Positions 136 through 30,200 of a stretch of DNA of 64,000 bases are shown here, one piece after another; the first letter of the stretch is position 1; every line of letters begins with the position of its first letter. This stretch comes from Paragordius varius (Eukaryota; Animalia; Nematomorpha). The position numbers and the translations under genes are program-made. The notes beneath the pieces were generated by a model that made no database searches, had not been told where the DNA came from, and saw only the letters and a program-made list of their open reading frames with translations. The DNA lies in assembly GCA_964247055.1 (NCBI GenBank), contig OZ176053.1, positions 992,001-1,056,000 of the forward strand, written 5' to 3'.

Positions 136-1018
136 ATTTCATAATTCATATCCTGATTTACGTTTAATTTCACATTATGGATGTAGGTTCCAAAAGATTT
201 AATTGCCCTTTAAACGGGCAGGTTTTAATAAAATAAACGCAAAAATTCCGAAATTGCGCGATAAAATGTAAAGAAATGCCAAAGAATTCAAGAATAACTT
301 TTTAATATTTTAAAATTAATTTTAAACCCAAATTTTGTTGGGAAAAAGATCCAAAAATATAATATGTTTTTATAATATTTTGTTTAAAGAAATCACAAAA
401 ATATTTTACATCAATTTTTCGGCATCAGTCATGATTCCAATAAAAAGACCTCCCAACTGTAAAAGATCACTTACATTTTCTAAAATCCGCTTTAATCTGC
501 TATATGATTCAAATGCGTAGTGGAGCGCATATTGACAATTAATCAGGTTAAATTTTATATTGGGATCTAAACCGTTTTTAGCCAATTCTGAACGCAAATT
601 AACCCAAATATAACTTTAAAATTATACTTCACAGCAATCTAGGCATATGAATTTAGCCTTAAAAGGTAATTTTGATTCGTTATACCTTGTTTTGCATTCT
701 AAAATACTCTCTGAAGCAATATCTATACTTTTATAAAAAATTTTAACCTACAAATACGACTAAATCGACTTTATCCTTATATTTTTTAAGGTCTCCCCCT
801 TTACCACAACACAAATCTAAAACATACACGGGTTTCGTTTGACAGAGAAATAAATATTTTTCTGTAATTTAAAAATTATCATTTTTACCAATAAGGATTT
901 GTTTGATGTAATTGTTGAAACATCTTAATTTAATTATTTCACTATTTACTCGGTGTTCTTCCTTTAAATTACTGTAATGATCGGCAATCTCGTTTTTAAA
1001 TCCACCTGAATTTTGCAT
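136..1018 (-). CDS. RNMT: mRNA cap guanine-N7 methyltransferase, 5' part (gene probably continues past the window start). Exons 1018-889, 861-748, 722-628, 603-410, probably 207-136
   Basis: Spliced translation MQNSGGFKNEIADHYSNL...IIKLRCFNNYIKQILI...VLDLCCGKGGDLKK...VFVDIASESILECKTRY...FNLINCQYALHYAFES...GGLFIG matches RNMT/Abd1 motifs (HYN, RxFNN, VLDLxCGKGGDL, CQFxxHYxFES). Introns of 27, 25 and 24 nt are needed to keep frame. Exons below 410 are less certain. Confidence 0.9.
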
Positions 1019-1065
1019 CTGTTTTTGCGCGTTATGAAATAGTTGACAGATGCGAAATCCGTCTC
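1019..1065. promoter_or_regulatory. 47-bp spacer between divergent RNMT and twinfilin start codons (candidate bidirectional promoter or overlapping 5' UTRs)
   Basis: RNMT ATG at 1018 (minus; in-frame TGA upstream at 1066-1064) and twinfilin ATG at 1066 (plus; conserved MSHQTGI N-terminus). Confidence 0.6.
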
Positions 1066-26285: not shown

Positions 26286-27297
26286 ATGGATTTAACGCAT
26301 GTGTAGTTACCAAAGTAAAAAAAATAACGCATCCCAAAAATATATTGAAAAGCATGGAAAATTTATTTTATTTTGATCATTTATATTTGTTTTTAATTTG
26401 TTGATAAAAATTTTACTCTAAATTTACCTATAAAACAAAGCCTTTTTGACAGTTTGATGCAAATTGGGATAAGTAAAGCTAAAGCAAAGTTATTATGAAA
26501 TATTCAACTGGAAAGGACGGTTCCGATTTAAATTTATACTTCTATCCTTAAATATTAGTTTAGATAAGTCAAAATATCTTAAGAGTCATTTAATTTACAT
26601 TTTTATAGGATATCGTGTTTTCTGTTTCTAACGCTAAATTACTTAATTTTTTAAACATTTGCCTTTAATATTAAAAAAATGGGTAAAGAGGACGCCAAAT
26701 AGATCAAAATAAATATTTAAACATAATTTCATACTTTCCTCTTAAAGCTAGGAAGAAATAGCTGTGTCATCGATAGTAAATTATAAATATTTCCGCCTCA
26801 TAAATATTCTTTTACCGTCATTCTATATGTACTCCAAATCGGGCGTATAAAAAATATCGTGAGTACATATATTTTAATAGAAAATGTAGCAGGAATATCA
26901 TGGTGCTTTTGGCTTTGGCCCTTATGAGTTATATTATGGCATTTGCTCTAGATCGAAAAATAGCCGAATTCGCGCACATATCATTTGATTGGTTTGGTAA
27001 TAGCTAAGTTATTTTAAAATATATAATAAACTACATATAAATTTTCTCATAAACCTTTAATTTTTAAATATTAGCTCTAAAAATCTCAAAGGCTTTTCTA
27101 AAAATAAGGTAGTTTTCCTGAAATAACTAAAATGCCATTTTGTTTTTTTTAATTGGTGAATTTTGATATTAAATTAAATAGGTTTAAAATTCGAATATTT
27201 GTTCGTTTTTGAAAAATGTTAATGTTTTTTTGATAAAATCACCACTTTAGATAAGATGAATATTCTAAACTGATAAAAATGTTGGGGATTATCAAAT

Positions 27298-30200
27298 ATG
27301 GTAAGTGTTATAAATTGTGTCTACGATGCCCTAAAAAAGCAGGAAGCGCGCTTCAACAAATTGCTAAAATTAAATTTTTGAAGAATGTATATATAGTTTT
27401 TACATATTTATAGTTAAATATAAATTTAACATTTTAAAATTACCGCATCACGGCATTGTTGCGTTCATTAAGAAAAAATAAATTTAGAATTTTTTCAAAT
27501 CTAAATTTTTTTAACTATTGTTTAGATTTTTATATATGATTAAAATGAAGCAATTTCTCCAAGAAAATTTTGTTCCACAAAATTCCAAAAATTTTGCCAT
27601 TTACTTATGAGACAATACCAAAATAAATATACTTATCTAACAGCAAAACCAAAAGCACTTGATACCATTTTCTATCAAATATACATATTTATCAGGTTTT
27701 TATTGTTTTTTGAGCTGAGCACTATGATATAGTCAACCGATGAGAACGACAATATATCCAGCTTGTAATATTTTAATTTTAATAATTTCCAGTAATAGAT
27801 ACAAAATTACTAACTTAAAAATAAAAAATATTTGATCTAAATATATTTTATAGACAAGGCAAACTGATTTTAGGTATGAACATGGAAATCATATGCACGT
27901 ACCTGTAAAATTTCACCCGATTGCCAATGATTTCGATTTCACCCAAAACGTTCTTGGGATCGGGATTAATGGAAAAGTTTTAGAATGCACTGATAAGATA
28001 CATCACACATCCTATGCTATAAAAGTATTTTTTTATTTTATTTTATATCCATAGCTCCTGAAAGACGATGAAAAAGCCAGACGAGAAGCCCAAATACATT
28101 TTCAGGTTTCGGATTGCAAAAATGTCGTGAGACTTTTTTGCGTCTACTCCAATGTGATATATGAAAAAACGTATTTAATTTATGTGATGGAATGGTAAGT
28201 ATATACTTAATTTAACCAATTTATATATAACTTGAGATATTTTTGTCCACGTTCTAAATATTACTTAAAGATTTAATCATAAAGGTTGTATATTAACCAT
28301 ATTTTATATCGTTATAAGTTAGAAAATTAGGTTAATGTAATATGTAACAAAGCCACATTAAATATAAGGTTAAAAAAATAATTGACTTGAAAAATTGGCA
28401 GTAACTCTAACTTTTTAAATTGTAAGCCCTAAAAAATTTAAATCTATTTATAATATTTTTTTATATTAGTATGAAAGGCGGTGAATTATTCGAACGAATT
28501 CAAAGACGATCCGATGCTCCCATTACGGAAAGGGGTAAACTATATTTTTTTTAAAAAAAATTAAGAAAAAAAATGATATTTAAGTTTTAATAATAATTTT
28601 TTTTAATACCTAATATTTATTAAAAACATAAATTTGATCGGTATATAAGAAATATGGAGTTGAAAACTCTCAAAAAAGCTTGTATTTTAGAAAACCAATT
28701 TATATAAGTCTATAAAATAATTTTAAGTAAATATTTAATATATATGGTTATATTATTCTTTCCAAATACATTTCTTTATTTTTACTAATTTTCATATTTT
28801 ATGGCATTTATATATTAATTGTTATATAGAAGCCTCCCAAATTATGCAGTCCATATGTTTTGCCATTGATTATCTCCATACTCAAAATATTGCTCATCGG
28901 GATCTCAAAGTAGTATTAAAAATATTTTTATTAAAAAATAAAACGATACTAATTAATTGTTATAGGAGTTTCTTATATTAGCCTGAAATTTTGCTAAAAA
29001 TATATATAGATAGATAGATATTGTGAAATCAACCAAATTATTAATTAGCTTGAATTTTTTTATAGCTATATAACAAATGTAAAAATGTTTTAATTTAAAA
29101 AATTATTGCATAGTCAAATTTATGATAATAAATTATTACAACAAATTGTTTTTTTTTAACTTTGTATTAGCCTGAAAATTTATTATATACGGACCATACT
29201 CCAGATGCAATATTAAAGCTGACTGATTTCGGATTTGCTAAGGAATGTTCTGATGCCTTGTTAAGGACGCCATGTTTTACTCCCTATTATGTTGGTAGAT
29301 GATAAACTTTTTTATTTTACAAAATATTCCGTATTTTTTATTAAAAATTATGAAATTTTTTAATTTCTTTGGCTTTAAAAGATTTTTGTTTAAAAATTAA
29401 TATTCATGGAATTTATATTTGACAAATTATTTGGATATTGAGAATTAATTTCTAACTTTGAAATGATTATAAAAACTCTTTTAGAACCATATTTTTTTAT
29501 TCCTTATAATAAAAATATTTTTTAATATATCAATATGTAATTTAGCACCTGAAATCTTAACCGTGGGGCAATATGATAAATCGTGTGATATTTGGTCTTT
29601 GGGCGTTATCATGTACATTTTGTAAGTTAAAATGCTATAATATTTTTGATTAAAAGAAGGAATCGCTTTTATTAAAGTTAGTTTCATTTACCGCATCTTA
29701 AGAAAGCATTTTTTTTTAAAAATTAAGTATTTTTTTGTTTTTGTTTTGGCTTATGATGACGGGACAAACTTTAATATTAAATACTAATATCTTATTTTGA
29801 AATTGGAAATTGATATGCTAATATACATAAAAATTTATAAGCGCTGTTTTTTTTATAGATTTAGATTTATTTTTACACGGGTGTATTCCACAAAAATCTT
29901 GTGAATTTTGAAGCGTGTATAAATTGAAATTATTAAACGTGAATAAGTCCTACTAGGATTTTACAATACTTAAATATCATAGATAAGGTTTAATATACAT
30001 GTCCATTCCATATATTGTGCAATGCAAAAACAATACTTTTTATTATGAATTATTTCGATTTTTACTGTAGATTGTGTGGATACCCGCCGTTTTATTCGTT
30101 GAGCGGAACGCCCTTTTCGCCCGGAATGCGAAAAAGACTTTATGCTGGTCAATACGAATTCCCTGAAAATGAATGGTCTAACATTTCTCAGCAAGGTTTT

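Follow-up and report, generated by a model that had tools for sequence, protein, structure and literature searches.

Putative 21–36 nt spliceosomal introns and a front-to-back gradient of intron length in genes of the nematomorph Paragordius varius

Among animals, introns shorter than 30 nt have been reported only in dicyemids (Dicyema japonicum) and myxobolid cnidarians (Henneguya, Thelohanellus and Myxobolus), two extremely reduced parasite lineages whose GT..AG introns have medians of 22–27 nt (PMC13644364, September 2026). Ciliate micro-introns fall into the same range, with ~25 nt in Paramecium and 15–16 nt in Stentor (cited in PMC13644364). The neodermatan flatworm Gyrodactylus salaris shows two short modes at ~32 and 58 bp, the shorter of which prevails at ordinals 1 and 2, together with many introns above 100 bp and an average length that declines with ordinal position (PMC4040987). 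The usual metazoan pattern is for first introns to be long (PMC4085337, PMC2636830).

Here we analyzed a window of 64,000 nt from Paragordius varius (contig OZ176053.1, positions 992,001 to 1,056,000), an ecdysozoan with an AT-rich, transposon-rich genome (assembly of 110.6 Mb). A sequence-only reading of this window had proposed eleven introns of 24–33 nt and had placed sub-30-nt animal introns in a few reduced lineages such as dicyemids, which is right in kind, although myxobolids have to be added (PMC13644364). Dicyemids and myxobolids resemble P. varius in being AT-rich, in having tiny GT..AG introns at conserved positions between conserved exons and in retaining U2AF (PMC13644364). While the class below ~30 nt is present here, genome-wide shortening and compactness are not: dicyemid and myxobolid genomes are compact with mostly short introns, whereas the 110 Mb genome of P. 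varius is repeat-rich. Moreover, introns of 25 nt and of kilobase size would share the same pre-mRNA here, no positional gradient is reported for dicyemids or myxobolids, and this lineage, nearest to Gordionus, is absent from the text and the lineage list of that study (PMC13644364).

The ciliate introns resemble those of P. varius in length range, in being AT-rich, in their GT..AG ends and in a spliceosome that seems to be complete, but they are non-animal and uniformly tiny, with no kilobase class, and some ciliates have reassigned stop codons, which are excluded here. As in G. salaris, there are two short classes (~21–36 and 53–86 nt) with the shortest first; in contrast, the short mode is ~6–8 nt shorter and falls below 30 nt, and average length rises steeply with ordinal. 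Neodermata moreover belong to another phylum, whereas the closest THOC1 to the one in our window is from the nematomorph Gordionus. Dependence on ordinal position is common to the general metazoan pattern and to P. varius, yet its direction is reversed here, with first introns being the shortest. The Schistosoma mansoni genome paper is said to describe small 5' and large 3' introns.

Eleven candidate introns and their conserved flanks

All eleven tiny segments were found exactly where the sequence-only reading had put them, with lengths of 27, 25, 24, 28, 27, 25, 25, 31, 33, 26 and 30 nt. Their GC content is 6–31% and 10/11 have GT..AG ends, the exception being a GT..GG segment in RNMT (627-604). 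As had been claimed, none could be retained without damage: five (those with lengths in multiples of three) would add a stop and the other six would shift the frame. The further claim that they join conserved protein blocks also held, as their removal gives proteins that are gap-free when compared with models from Pfam, chains of solved MAPKAPK2 structures and THOC1 of Gordionus. Exons were searched singly, and joined translations served only for testing open frames. Ciliate-type internal eliminated sequences were considered and rejected, given the GT..AG ends and the lack of a TA repeat alongside.

The most detailed comparison came from THOC1 (20059–26285, minus strand, as traced), with introns of 25, 31, 33, 26 and 326 nt followed by others of ~220–1320 nt. 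The Gordionus protein was that of the nearest relative found; a database search with its full length returned no P. varius protein among the matches. Exons 2–6 correspond to its residues 25–42, 44–64, 66–103, 105–152 and 154–190, leaving exactly one residue unaligned at each junction, that is, a split codon. Intron 2 (26107–26137, 31 nt) thus separates residues 25–42 from 44–64, intron 3 (26010–26042, 33 nt) residues 44–64 from 66–103, and intron 4 (25865–25890, 26 nt) residues 66–103 from 105–152 as well as positions 17–53 from 59–103 of PF11957; intron 1 (26193–26217) measures 25 nt, and all four have GT..AG ends.

A second, diverged copy of the 5' end of THOC1 (L002) provided an internal comparison. 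Across exons 1–6 the two copies share 90.1% identity and have 0 gap columns; exon substitutions are distributed 14/2/42 over the three codon positions of the spliced frame. The four tiny introns are only 76.4% identical, and all length changes between the copies (7, 2 and 1 nt) lie within them with GT/AG preserved. Intron 1 is again 25 nt in the paralogue, intron 2 is 24 nt owing to the 7-nt indel, intron 3 is 31 nt and intron 4 is 27 nt, the last being 65% identical compared with ~90% for the adjoining exons.

In three other genes, the blocks on either side of the tiny segments are also conserved and collinear. The 5' part of RNMT (1–1015, minus strand) runs past the left edge of the window, and its exons match PF03291 at positions 7–49, 60–81, 92–127 and 130–187. 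Intron 1 (862–888, 27 nt, GT..AG, with an in-frame TAA) lies between the first two of these blocks, and intron 2 (723–747, 25 nt, GT..AG, frame-breaking) between the second and third. The third segment (604–627, 24 nt, GT..GG) contains two in-frame TAA and is crossed from PF03291 position 127 to 130; a manual search for a GT/GC..AG pair of any length that preserves the frame returned none, and no RNMT paralogue was found for comparing this segment. The next intron is at least ~500 nt long. ATP synthase gamma (ATP5F1C, 10517–13896, minus strand) has six exons and introns of 27, 25, 538, ~1210 and ~580 nt, with exon matches to PF00231 at 7–44, 69–124, 178–253 and 253–284. Exon 2, downstream of GT..AG intron 1 (13800–13826, 27 nt), starts at position 7 of this model, and intron 2 (13643–13667, 25 nt, GT..AG) falls between 7–44 and 69–124. 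In the MAPKAPK-like gene (27893–31501, plus strand), intron 1 (28025–28054, 30 nt, GT..AG), followed by introns of ~250–400 nt, separates residues 53–93 from 95–139 of 1kwp_A without gaps, exon 1 ending at residue 93 and the second residue of exon 2 aligning with residue 95.

The case of the twinfilin-like gene (1066–9510, plus strand) is weaker. Its 28-nt first intron (1091–1118, GT..AG) follows a first exon of 8 codons and precedes introns of ~340–2200 nt. Exon 2 has no in-frame Met, and the sole ATG connects to it via the GT..AG of this segment. The downstream exons encode two ADF-H domains (Cofilin_ADF positions 39–85 and 85–107, plus the second domain); exon 2 itself, 26 aa long, had no match in Pfam when searched alone and only a spurious tau match in PDB.

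Support for these introns is comparative rather than statistical on the letters alone, since a scan for GT(18–40)AG between open, codon-biased frames had no power: it returned 31 candidates, compared with 27–61 for control dinucleotide pairs, and recovered 5/10 of the canonical claimed introns. Loose TTNAT/CTTAT-like motifs are located 8–14 nt upstream of AG in the ten canonical introns but are indistinguishable from chance in 75% A+T sequence.

Intron length along the gene

The tiny segments had been described as the first one to four introns of RNMT, twinfilin, ATP5F1C and THOC1, which we confirmed and which applies to the MAPKAPK-like gene as well. Later introns in these genes are ~220–2200 nt, and the long ones contain repeats and MITE-like units, again in line with the original description. 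Between 27 and 49% of the long introns is repeated within the window (34–49% for the long THOC1 introns that hold MITE-like units); unlike the longer ones, introns of 277–538 nt are not repeat-rich. The MITE-like units have inverted ends of 36–45 nt, such as those of 36–40 nt at 21039–22011 inside a long THOC1 intron (pairs I1, I4, I5 and I7) and those of 45 nt at 23288–23551 in the THOC1 gene body (pairs I2 and I10). Transposon-looking open reading frames at 15.7–18.6 kb had no significant Pfam match. Within a single gene, lengths differ up to ~90-fold in the window (28 vs 2190 nt) and ~200-fold in CCT2 (27 vs ~5475 nt).

The 5' bias was also upheld elsewhere in the genome, in two unrelated families. 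The combined sample comprised 33 genes (6 in the window, 8 CCT and 19 Ras-type), with ordinals counted over coding introns only, so that 5' UTR introns are outside the count. Introns of up to 36 nt occupied 19/33 first positions and 0/34 positions from the sixth on, and the first ordinal held 19 tiny, 8 short and 6 long introns, the second 12, 4 and 17, and those from the sixth on 0, 2 and 32. Altogether, the tiny class included 43 introns of 21–36 nt (median 26), an intermediate class of 53–86 nt lay between tiny and long, and 97/157 tabulated introns exceeded 100 nt. Random placement of the 11 tiny introns among the window genes matched the observed front-loading in 1/100,000 permutations (p = 1e-5). 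The same test gave p < 1e-5 for CCT genes and, for Ras-type genes, p = 0.009 with introns of up to 36 nt and p = 0.0006 with those of up to 100 nt.

Individual genes illustrate the pattern. In CCT genes, the opening introns measure 25/26, 23/23, 24, 27/28/36, 29 and 27 nt, and the subsequent ones run to hundreds of nt. Contiguous HMM coordinates were available for at least 25 of the later junctions, all of which exceed 130 nt except two of 67–75 nt, while some other later intervals include undetected exons and could hide short introns. Examples of intron order in Ras-type genes are 23, 24, 28, 67, 1392; 27, 31, 693, 306; and 33, 71, 893 nt. Wherever tiny introns of Ras and CCT genes were resolved, their ends were GT..AG.

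The concentration at 5' ends is therefore real as a front-to-back gradient, but it is a gradient and not a rule, and tiny introns also occur away from 5' ends. Some genes have tiny introns only, which reach ~550 nt from the ATG, and others have long introns only. A Rab8/10-like gene carries a 31-nt GT..AG intron downstream of a 1.4-kb intron, near its 3' end, and a CCT8-like gene has introns of 67 and 75 nt at the 3' end. Conversely, the first intron is long in several Rab genes and in the CAMK1-like gene of the window (33828–39364, plus strand), a contrast case whose first coding introns measure 1106, 370 and 288 nt and which has no tiny intron.

Splicing machinery and possible causes of the gradient

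The sequence-only reading had suggested that the spliceosome is adapted to very short introns and had pointed to losses or truncations of U1/U2, U2AF and SF1 components as a possible sign. Neither was borne out. The 5' end of U1 snRNA (ACTTACCTG) and the branch-point box of U2 snRNA (GTAGTA) are canonical, an SF1 gene and a U2AF65-like gene are present, and no loss or truncation was seen among the components examined (U1, U2, SF1 and the U2AF65-like gene). With these components canonical or present, no altered spliceosome is demonstrated. On the other hand, a distance of ~10 nt from 5' splice site to branch point is below what co-occupancy by canonical U1 and U2 is thought to allow, so that an adaptation of the machinery invisible in snRNA sequences may exist. 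Minor (U12-type) introns were considered and rejected, as there are no AT-AC or GTATCCTT-type 5' ends and the tiny introns begin with GTA/GTT then A/T; a search for U12 snRNA gave no match.

Taking the comparative evidence and the gradient together, we consider it probable that the tiny segments are genuine U2-type (major) GT-AG introns spliced in vivo, and that 21–36 nt is the minimal intron length of this nematomorph-related lineage. Being too short for exon definition, such introns would be recognized across their own length by a major spliceosome that is otherwise ordinary. Those near the start codon would remain at or near the minimal length, while downstream introns would have grown to hundreds or thousands of bases, mainly through insertion of MITEs and other repeats. 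The most likely cause would be selection that removes insertions from promoter-proximal introns and tolerates distal ones, with tolerance varying by gene so that housekeeping GTPases stay all-tiny and some others become all-long. The position-dependent constraint of the sequence-only reading is consistent with these data, its selective cause being presumptive.

The alternative that survives best, although we regard it as unlikely, is a mutational gradient with no difference in fitness: transposons and MITEs would favor sites away from promoters, or small deletions would be commoner near the promoter, where genes are most heavily transcribed. The repeat content of the long introns but not of those of 277–538 nt agrees with this scenario, and genes with wholly tiny or wholly long introns could mirror regional insertion rates. 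However, in THOC1, ATP5F1C, CCT3, CCT4 and CCT6 the step from ~25–36 nt to more than 300 nt takes place within a few hundred bases, which a smooth bias would hardly produce. Many DNA transposons, moreover, prefer open, promoter-near chromatin, which predicts the opposite gradient.

Considerably less probable is a coupling of splicing to the 5' end, in which U1/U2 loading tied to either the cap-binding complex or transcription initiation would allow introns of 21–36 nt to be removed efficiently only in the first few hundred nt; the gradient would then record a splicing mode limited by position instead of the tolerance of transposons. That tiny introns come first in almost all mixed genes is what such coupling predicts, but the 31-nt intron beyond 1.4 kb of intron at the 3' end of the Rab8/10-like gene, the all-tiny genes with their reach of ~550 nt and the ordinary appearance of U1, U2, SF1 and U2AF65 speak against it.

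It is very improbable that the gradient reflects detection, tiny introns being easiest to notice beside recognizable N-termini. The initial cases were indeed picked by eye, the scan on the letters was powerless and short exons may elude HMM-based detection; nevertheless, the Ras and CCT sets used every exon match over the whole domain, so that tiny introns were detectable anywhere, in-frame ones would show as stops or excess length, and the all-tiny Ras genes show that tiny introns at the 3' end do not go unnoticed. Readings in which the segments are no introns at all (a changed genetic code, somatic DNA excision as in ciliates, assembly errors or pseudogenes) can draw on the 5/11 in-frame segments, which nothing but TAA/TAG stops sets apart from coding sequence, and on the RNMT segment that lacks AG, but we give them hardly any credence in view of the 6/11 frame shifts, orthologous proteins that lack exactly these segments, ends of GT..AG instead of TA..TA, THOC1 paralogue indels whose lengths are not divisible by three and which occur solely within the segments while exon changes are third-position, and the same pattern in ~30 unrelated conserved genes.

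If the tiny segments are spliced as proposed, a sub-30-nt class in a non-reduced ecdysozoan genome would separate the capacity of a spliceosome for 21–36 nt from genome streamlining. It would provide a natural setting where a single machinery has to combine intron definition with exon definition in the same gene, and the steep, short-first gradient would give a handle on what shields promoter-proximal introns from expansion. In practical terms, standard tools for gene finding and alignment that require introns of at least 30–40 nt are expected to mis-annotate many gene 5' ends in this genome. In a small sample, 19/45 introns had lengths divisible by three, showing no deficit; a shortage of stop-free introns of such lengths would point to NMD surveillance. 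Tiny introns that are both in frame and stop-free will be read as additional residues, for example in a RhoA-like gene, whose 148-aa last exon, of sufficient length for full-length matches, gave no P. varius protein and nothing above 88% identity in a protein-database search.

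Very short segments in the window genes

The window is nuclear animal DNA with 21-33% G+C and corresponds to positions 992001-1056000 of contig C4 in the searched genome assembly (G000; 110.6 Mb, 44 contigs). Eleven segments of 24-33 nt had been proposed in a sequence-only reading as introns of RNMT (888-862, 747-723 and 627-604), twinfilin (1091-1118), ATP5F1C (13826-13800 and 13667-13643), THOC1 (26217-26193, 26137-26107, 26042-26010 and 25890-25865) and MAPKAPK (28025-28054), and the coordinates of all 11 proved exact. Ten of the 11 start with GT and end with AG. Collinearity was tested in searches that each took a single exon as query. 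RNMT exons fell on positions 7-49, 60-81 and 92-127 of PF03291, collinear and free of gaps, and those of ATP synthase gamma (ATP5F1C) on positions 7-44, 69-124, 178-253 and 253-284 of PF00231, with its unmatched exon 4 (47 residues) filling positions 125-177. On chain 1kwp_A, MAPKAPK exon 1 reaches residue 93 and residue 2 of exon 2 corresponds to residue 95. A search of 1.8 billion representative proteins with the most conserved THOC1 exon gave THOC1 of the horsehair worm Gordionus sp. m RMFG-2023 as best match (90% identity in that exon), followed by vertebrates (72-74%); the remaining THOC1 exons are far more diverged. THOC1 exons 2-6 correspond to Gordionus residues 25-42, 44-64, 66-103, 105-152 and 154-190, leaving at each junction one residue, that of the split codon. 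The Gordionus assembly is reported to have a GC content of 26.9% (10.1101/2023.06.26.546503). Taken together, these data place the window in a horsehair-worm relative distinct from Gordionus. No protein of the same species was found in the protein database with the THOC1 and RhoA-like queries.

Two segments call for separate comment. RNMT 627-604 starts with GT, ends with GG and contains two in-frame TAA codons, and the PF03291 methyltransferase model continues across it (exon 3 residue 30 at position 127, exon 4 residue 6 at position 130). No canonical donor/acceptor pair of whatever length preserves the frame here, and no second copy for comparison was found in the genome; judged from sequence, it is probably an intron with a non-canonical 3' end. 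Twinfilin intron 1 is the least supported of the ten GT..AG introns, its flanking exons (8 codons and 26 residues) being below the length usable in searches. Exon 2 has no in-frame Met, the sole ATG reaches it via the GT..AG of intron 1, and the downstream exons encode two ADF-H domains. At 1015-1066, RNMT on the minus strand and twinfilin on the plus strand lie head to head with start codons only 50 nt apart, which implies a common promoter and both 5'UTRs within the gap or inside the neighboring gene. The 5' site of the ten GT..AG introns is little more than GT followed by A or T, with G at +5 in only two; this resembles dicyemids and myxobolids, in which splice-site motifs are reported to be reduced (PMC13644364).

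In gene order, intron lengths are 27, 25, 24 and then at least ~500 nt in RNMT; 28, ~1786, 340, 2190 nt and further long ones in twinfilin; 27, 25, 538, ~1210 and ~580 nt in ATP5F1C; 25, 31, 33, 26, 326 and then ~220-1320 nt in THOC1; and 30, 277, ~294 nt and on in MAPKAPK. A CAMK1-like gene that the earlier reading had not listed lacks tiny introns (≤36 nt) and begins with 1106, 370 and 288 nt. When intron order was shuffled within genes, this front-loading was matched in 1 of 100,000 trials. The long introns had been described as often MITE-filled, which agrees with the 27-49% of them that is repeated elsewhere in the window and with the units with 36-45-nt inverted ends that they contain. 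The THOC1 gene body holds at least two such MITE-like families (21039-22011, 22717-23043 and 23288-23551; inverted ends of 36-45 nt), one with ends common to at least three copies within 2.5 kb, and a (TA)n microsatellite (25680-25719) directly follows the donor of intron 5, its first long intron. Between ATP5F1C and THOC1, two long ORFs (15693-16220, plus strand; 17806-18589, minus strand) look transposon-derived by eye; a Pfam search returned no significant match for either.

A duplicate of the THOC1 5' end

The first 1.3 kb of THOC1 has a second copy 155 kb away with 78% identity (locus L002, G000:C4:859896-864112; match 861396-862612), covering at least exons 1-6. Between copies, these exons are 90.1% identical without a single gap, and the 58 substitutions, in the frame with tiny introns removed, are distributed 14/2/42 over codon positions 1/2/3. 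Identity is 76.4% over the four tiny introns, which measure 25, 24, 31 and 27 nt in the copy versus 25, 31, 33 and 26 nt in the window; all short indels between the copies (7, 2 and 1 nt, none divisible by three) lie inside them, yet GT and AG are retained in both copies despite changed adjacent bases. At the sequence level, this comparison matches the prediction for introns, and the pattern is not expected if the segments were coding sequence, assembly noise or the product of an altered genetic code. Both copies look constrained, given the exon identity and the third-position bias of the changes.

Intron order in two gene families and in other animals

Two Pfam families, the CCT chaperonins and Ras-type GTPases, were searched genome-wide, using all exon-level matches. 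First introns measure 25 and 26 nt in the CCT4-like gene, 23 and 23 in CCT6-like, 24 and then ~71 and 73 in CCT1-like, 27, 28 and 36 in CCT3-like, 27 (four bases past the ATG) and then 55 and 61 in CCT2-like, 29 in CCT8-like, 61 in CCT5-like, and 84 and 57 in CCT7-like, several of the approximate lengths being derived from HMM coordinates. Subsequent introns in all eight genes range from ~130 to several thousand nt, some of these intervals including undetected exons. At least 25 later junctions have contiguous model coordinates, and all exceed 130 nt except the two that close the CCT8-like gene (L049, G000:C1:9026705-9027140), where introns of ~67 and 75 nt follow four long ones. This case hints that short introns may also be retained close to 3' ends.

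Among the Ras-type genes, mixed ones include series of 23, 24, 28, 67, 1392; 27, 31, 693, 306; 33, 71, 893; 58, 2876; and 53, 812 nt. All introns are tiny in five genes (RhoA-like 23, 24; Rab11-like 25, 24, 25; Ral-like 21, 24; another Rab 27, 29, 28, 23; and one with about five of 21-22 nt), and all are long (>100 nt) in six others. In the RhoA-like gene (L022, G000:C5:8097580-8098142, minus strand), the 23-nt intron is accompanied by a GT..AG intron of 24 nt; this second one is in frame and stop-free and would pass as eight extra residues in ORF calling. Rab11-, Ral- and Rab-like genes also have comparable introns.

In 33 pooled genes, with only coding introns counted and in-frame tiny introns inside matches called partly from prior knowledge of the CCT and Ras families, tiny, short (37-100 nt) and long introns numbered 19/8/6 at the first position, 12/4/17 at the second, 8/2/13 at the third, 3/1/14 at the fourth, 1/0/15 at the fifth and 0/2/32 from the sixth onward. 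The proposed concentration of tiny introns at gene 5' ends thus holds beyond the window, with permutation p < 1e-5 in CCT genes and p = 0.009 in Ras genes (0.0006 for introns ≤100 nt).

In a 2026 survey covering 51 animal genomes, the only animals with introns below 30 nt were myxobolid cnidarians and Dicyema, whose genomes are compact, and the text of the survey does not mention nematomorphs (PMC13644364); the word "intron" does not occur in the Gordionus genome preprint (10.1101/2023.06.26.546503) or in a nematomorph/mermithid comparison. The first intron of an animal gene is usually its longest (PMC4085337, PMC2636830). For the positional effect, the closest match in the literature is Gyrodactylus salaris, with intron modes of ~32 and 58 bp, the shorter commonest at positions 1-2, although its mean intron length drops with ordinal position (PMC4040987). 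Against these reports, the size class is already known and the lineage and genomic setting are new, and a tendency reported before takes a new form in the steep short-first gradient.

Possible cause of the gradient and the splicing machinery

Judging from sequence, the tiny introns are most likely the minimal introns of this lineage, most likely removed by intron definition, and the chance of expansion would grow with distance from the gene start and vary among genes. We favor selection against promoter-near insertions as the cause, since these could interfere with initiation, spread silencing from transposons or bring cryptic signals into the initial few hundred bases; insertions further downstream would be better tolerated, as long introns there may be manageable by exon definition. 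The main rival to such selection is a gradient arising purely from mutational bias. A splicing mode for tiny introns restricted to the 5' end is unlikely, as in one Rab8/10-like gene (n = 1) an intron of 31 nt comes after one of 1.4 kb, and all-tiny genes exist.

For the suggestion of a spliceosome adapted to very short introns, the components examined gave no sign of modification: U1 genes have a canonical 5' end and U2 genes a canonical branch-point box, and the genome contains an SF1 helix-hairpin exon (74.9 bits) and a U2AF65-like gene of four exons. Protein-level adaptation may still exist, because the textbook side-by-side seating of U1 and U2 is hardly possible on 21-25 nt. U12 snRNA (RF00007) gave no match in a whole-genome search, and this genome may lack the minor spliceosome, as nematodes do. 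U1 genes are clustered with many decayed copies on contig 6 (G000:C6:565000-634000), and U2 genes with decayed copies on contig 3 (C3:257000-528000).
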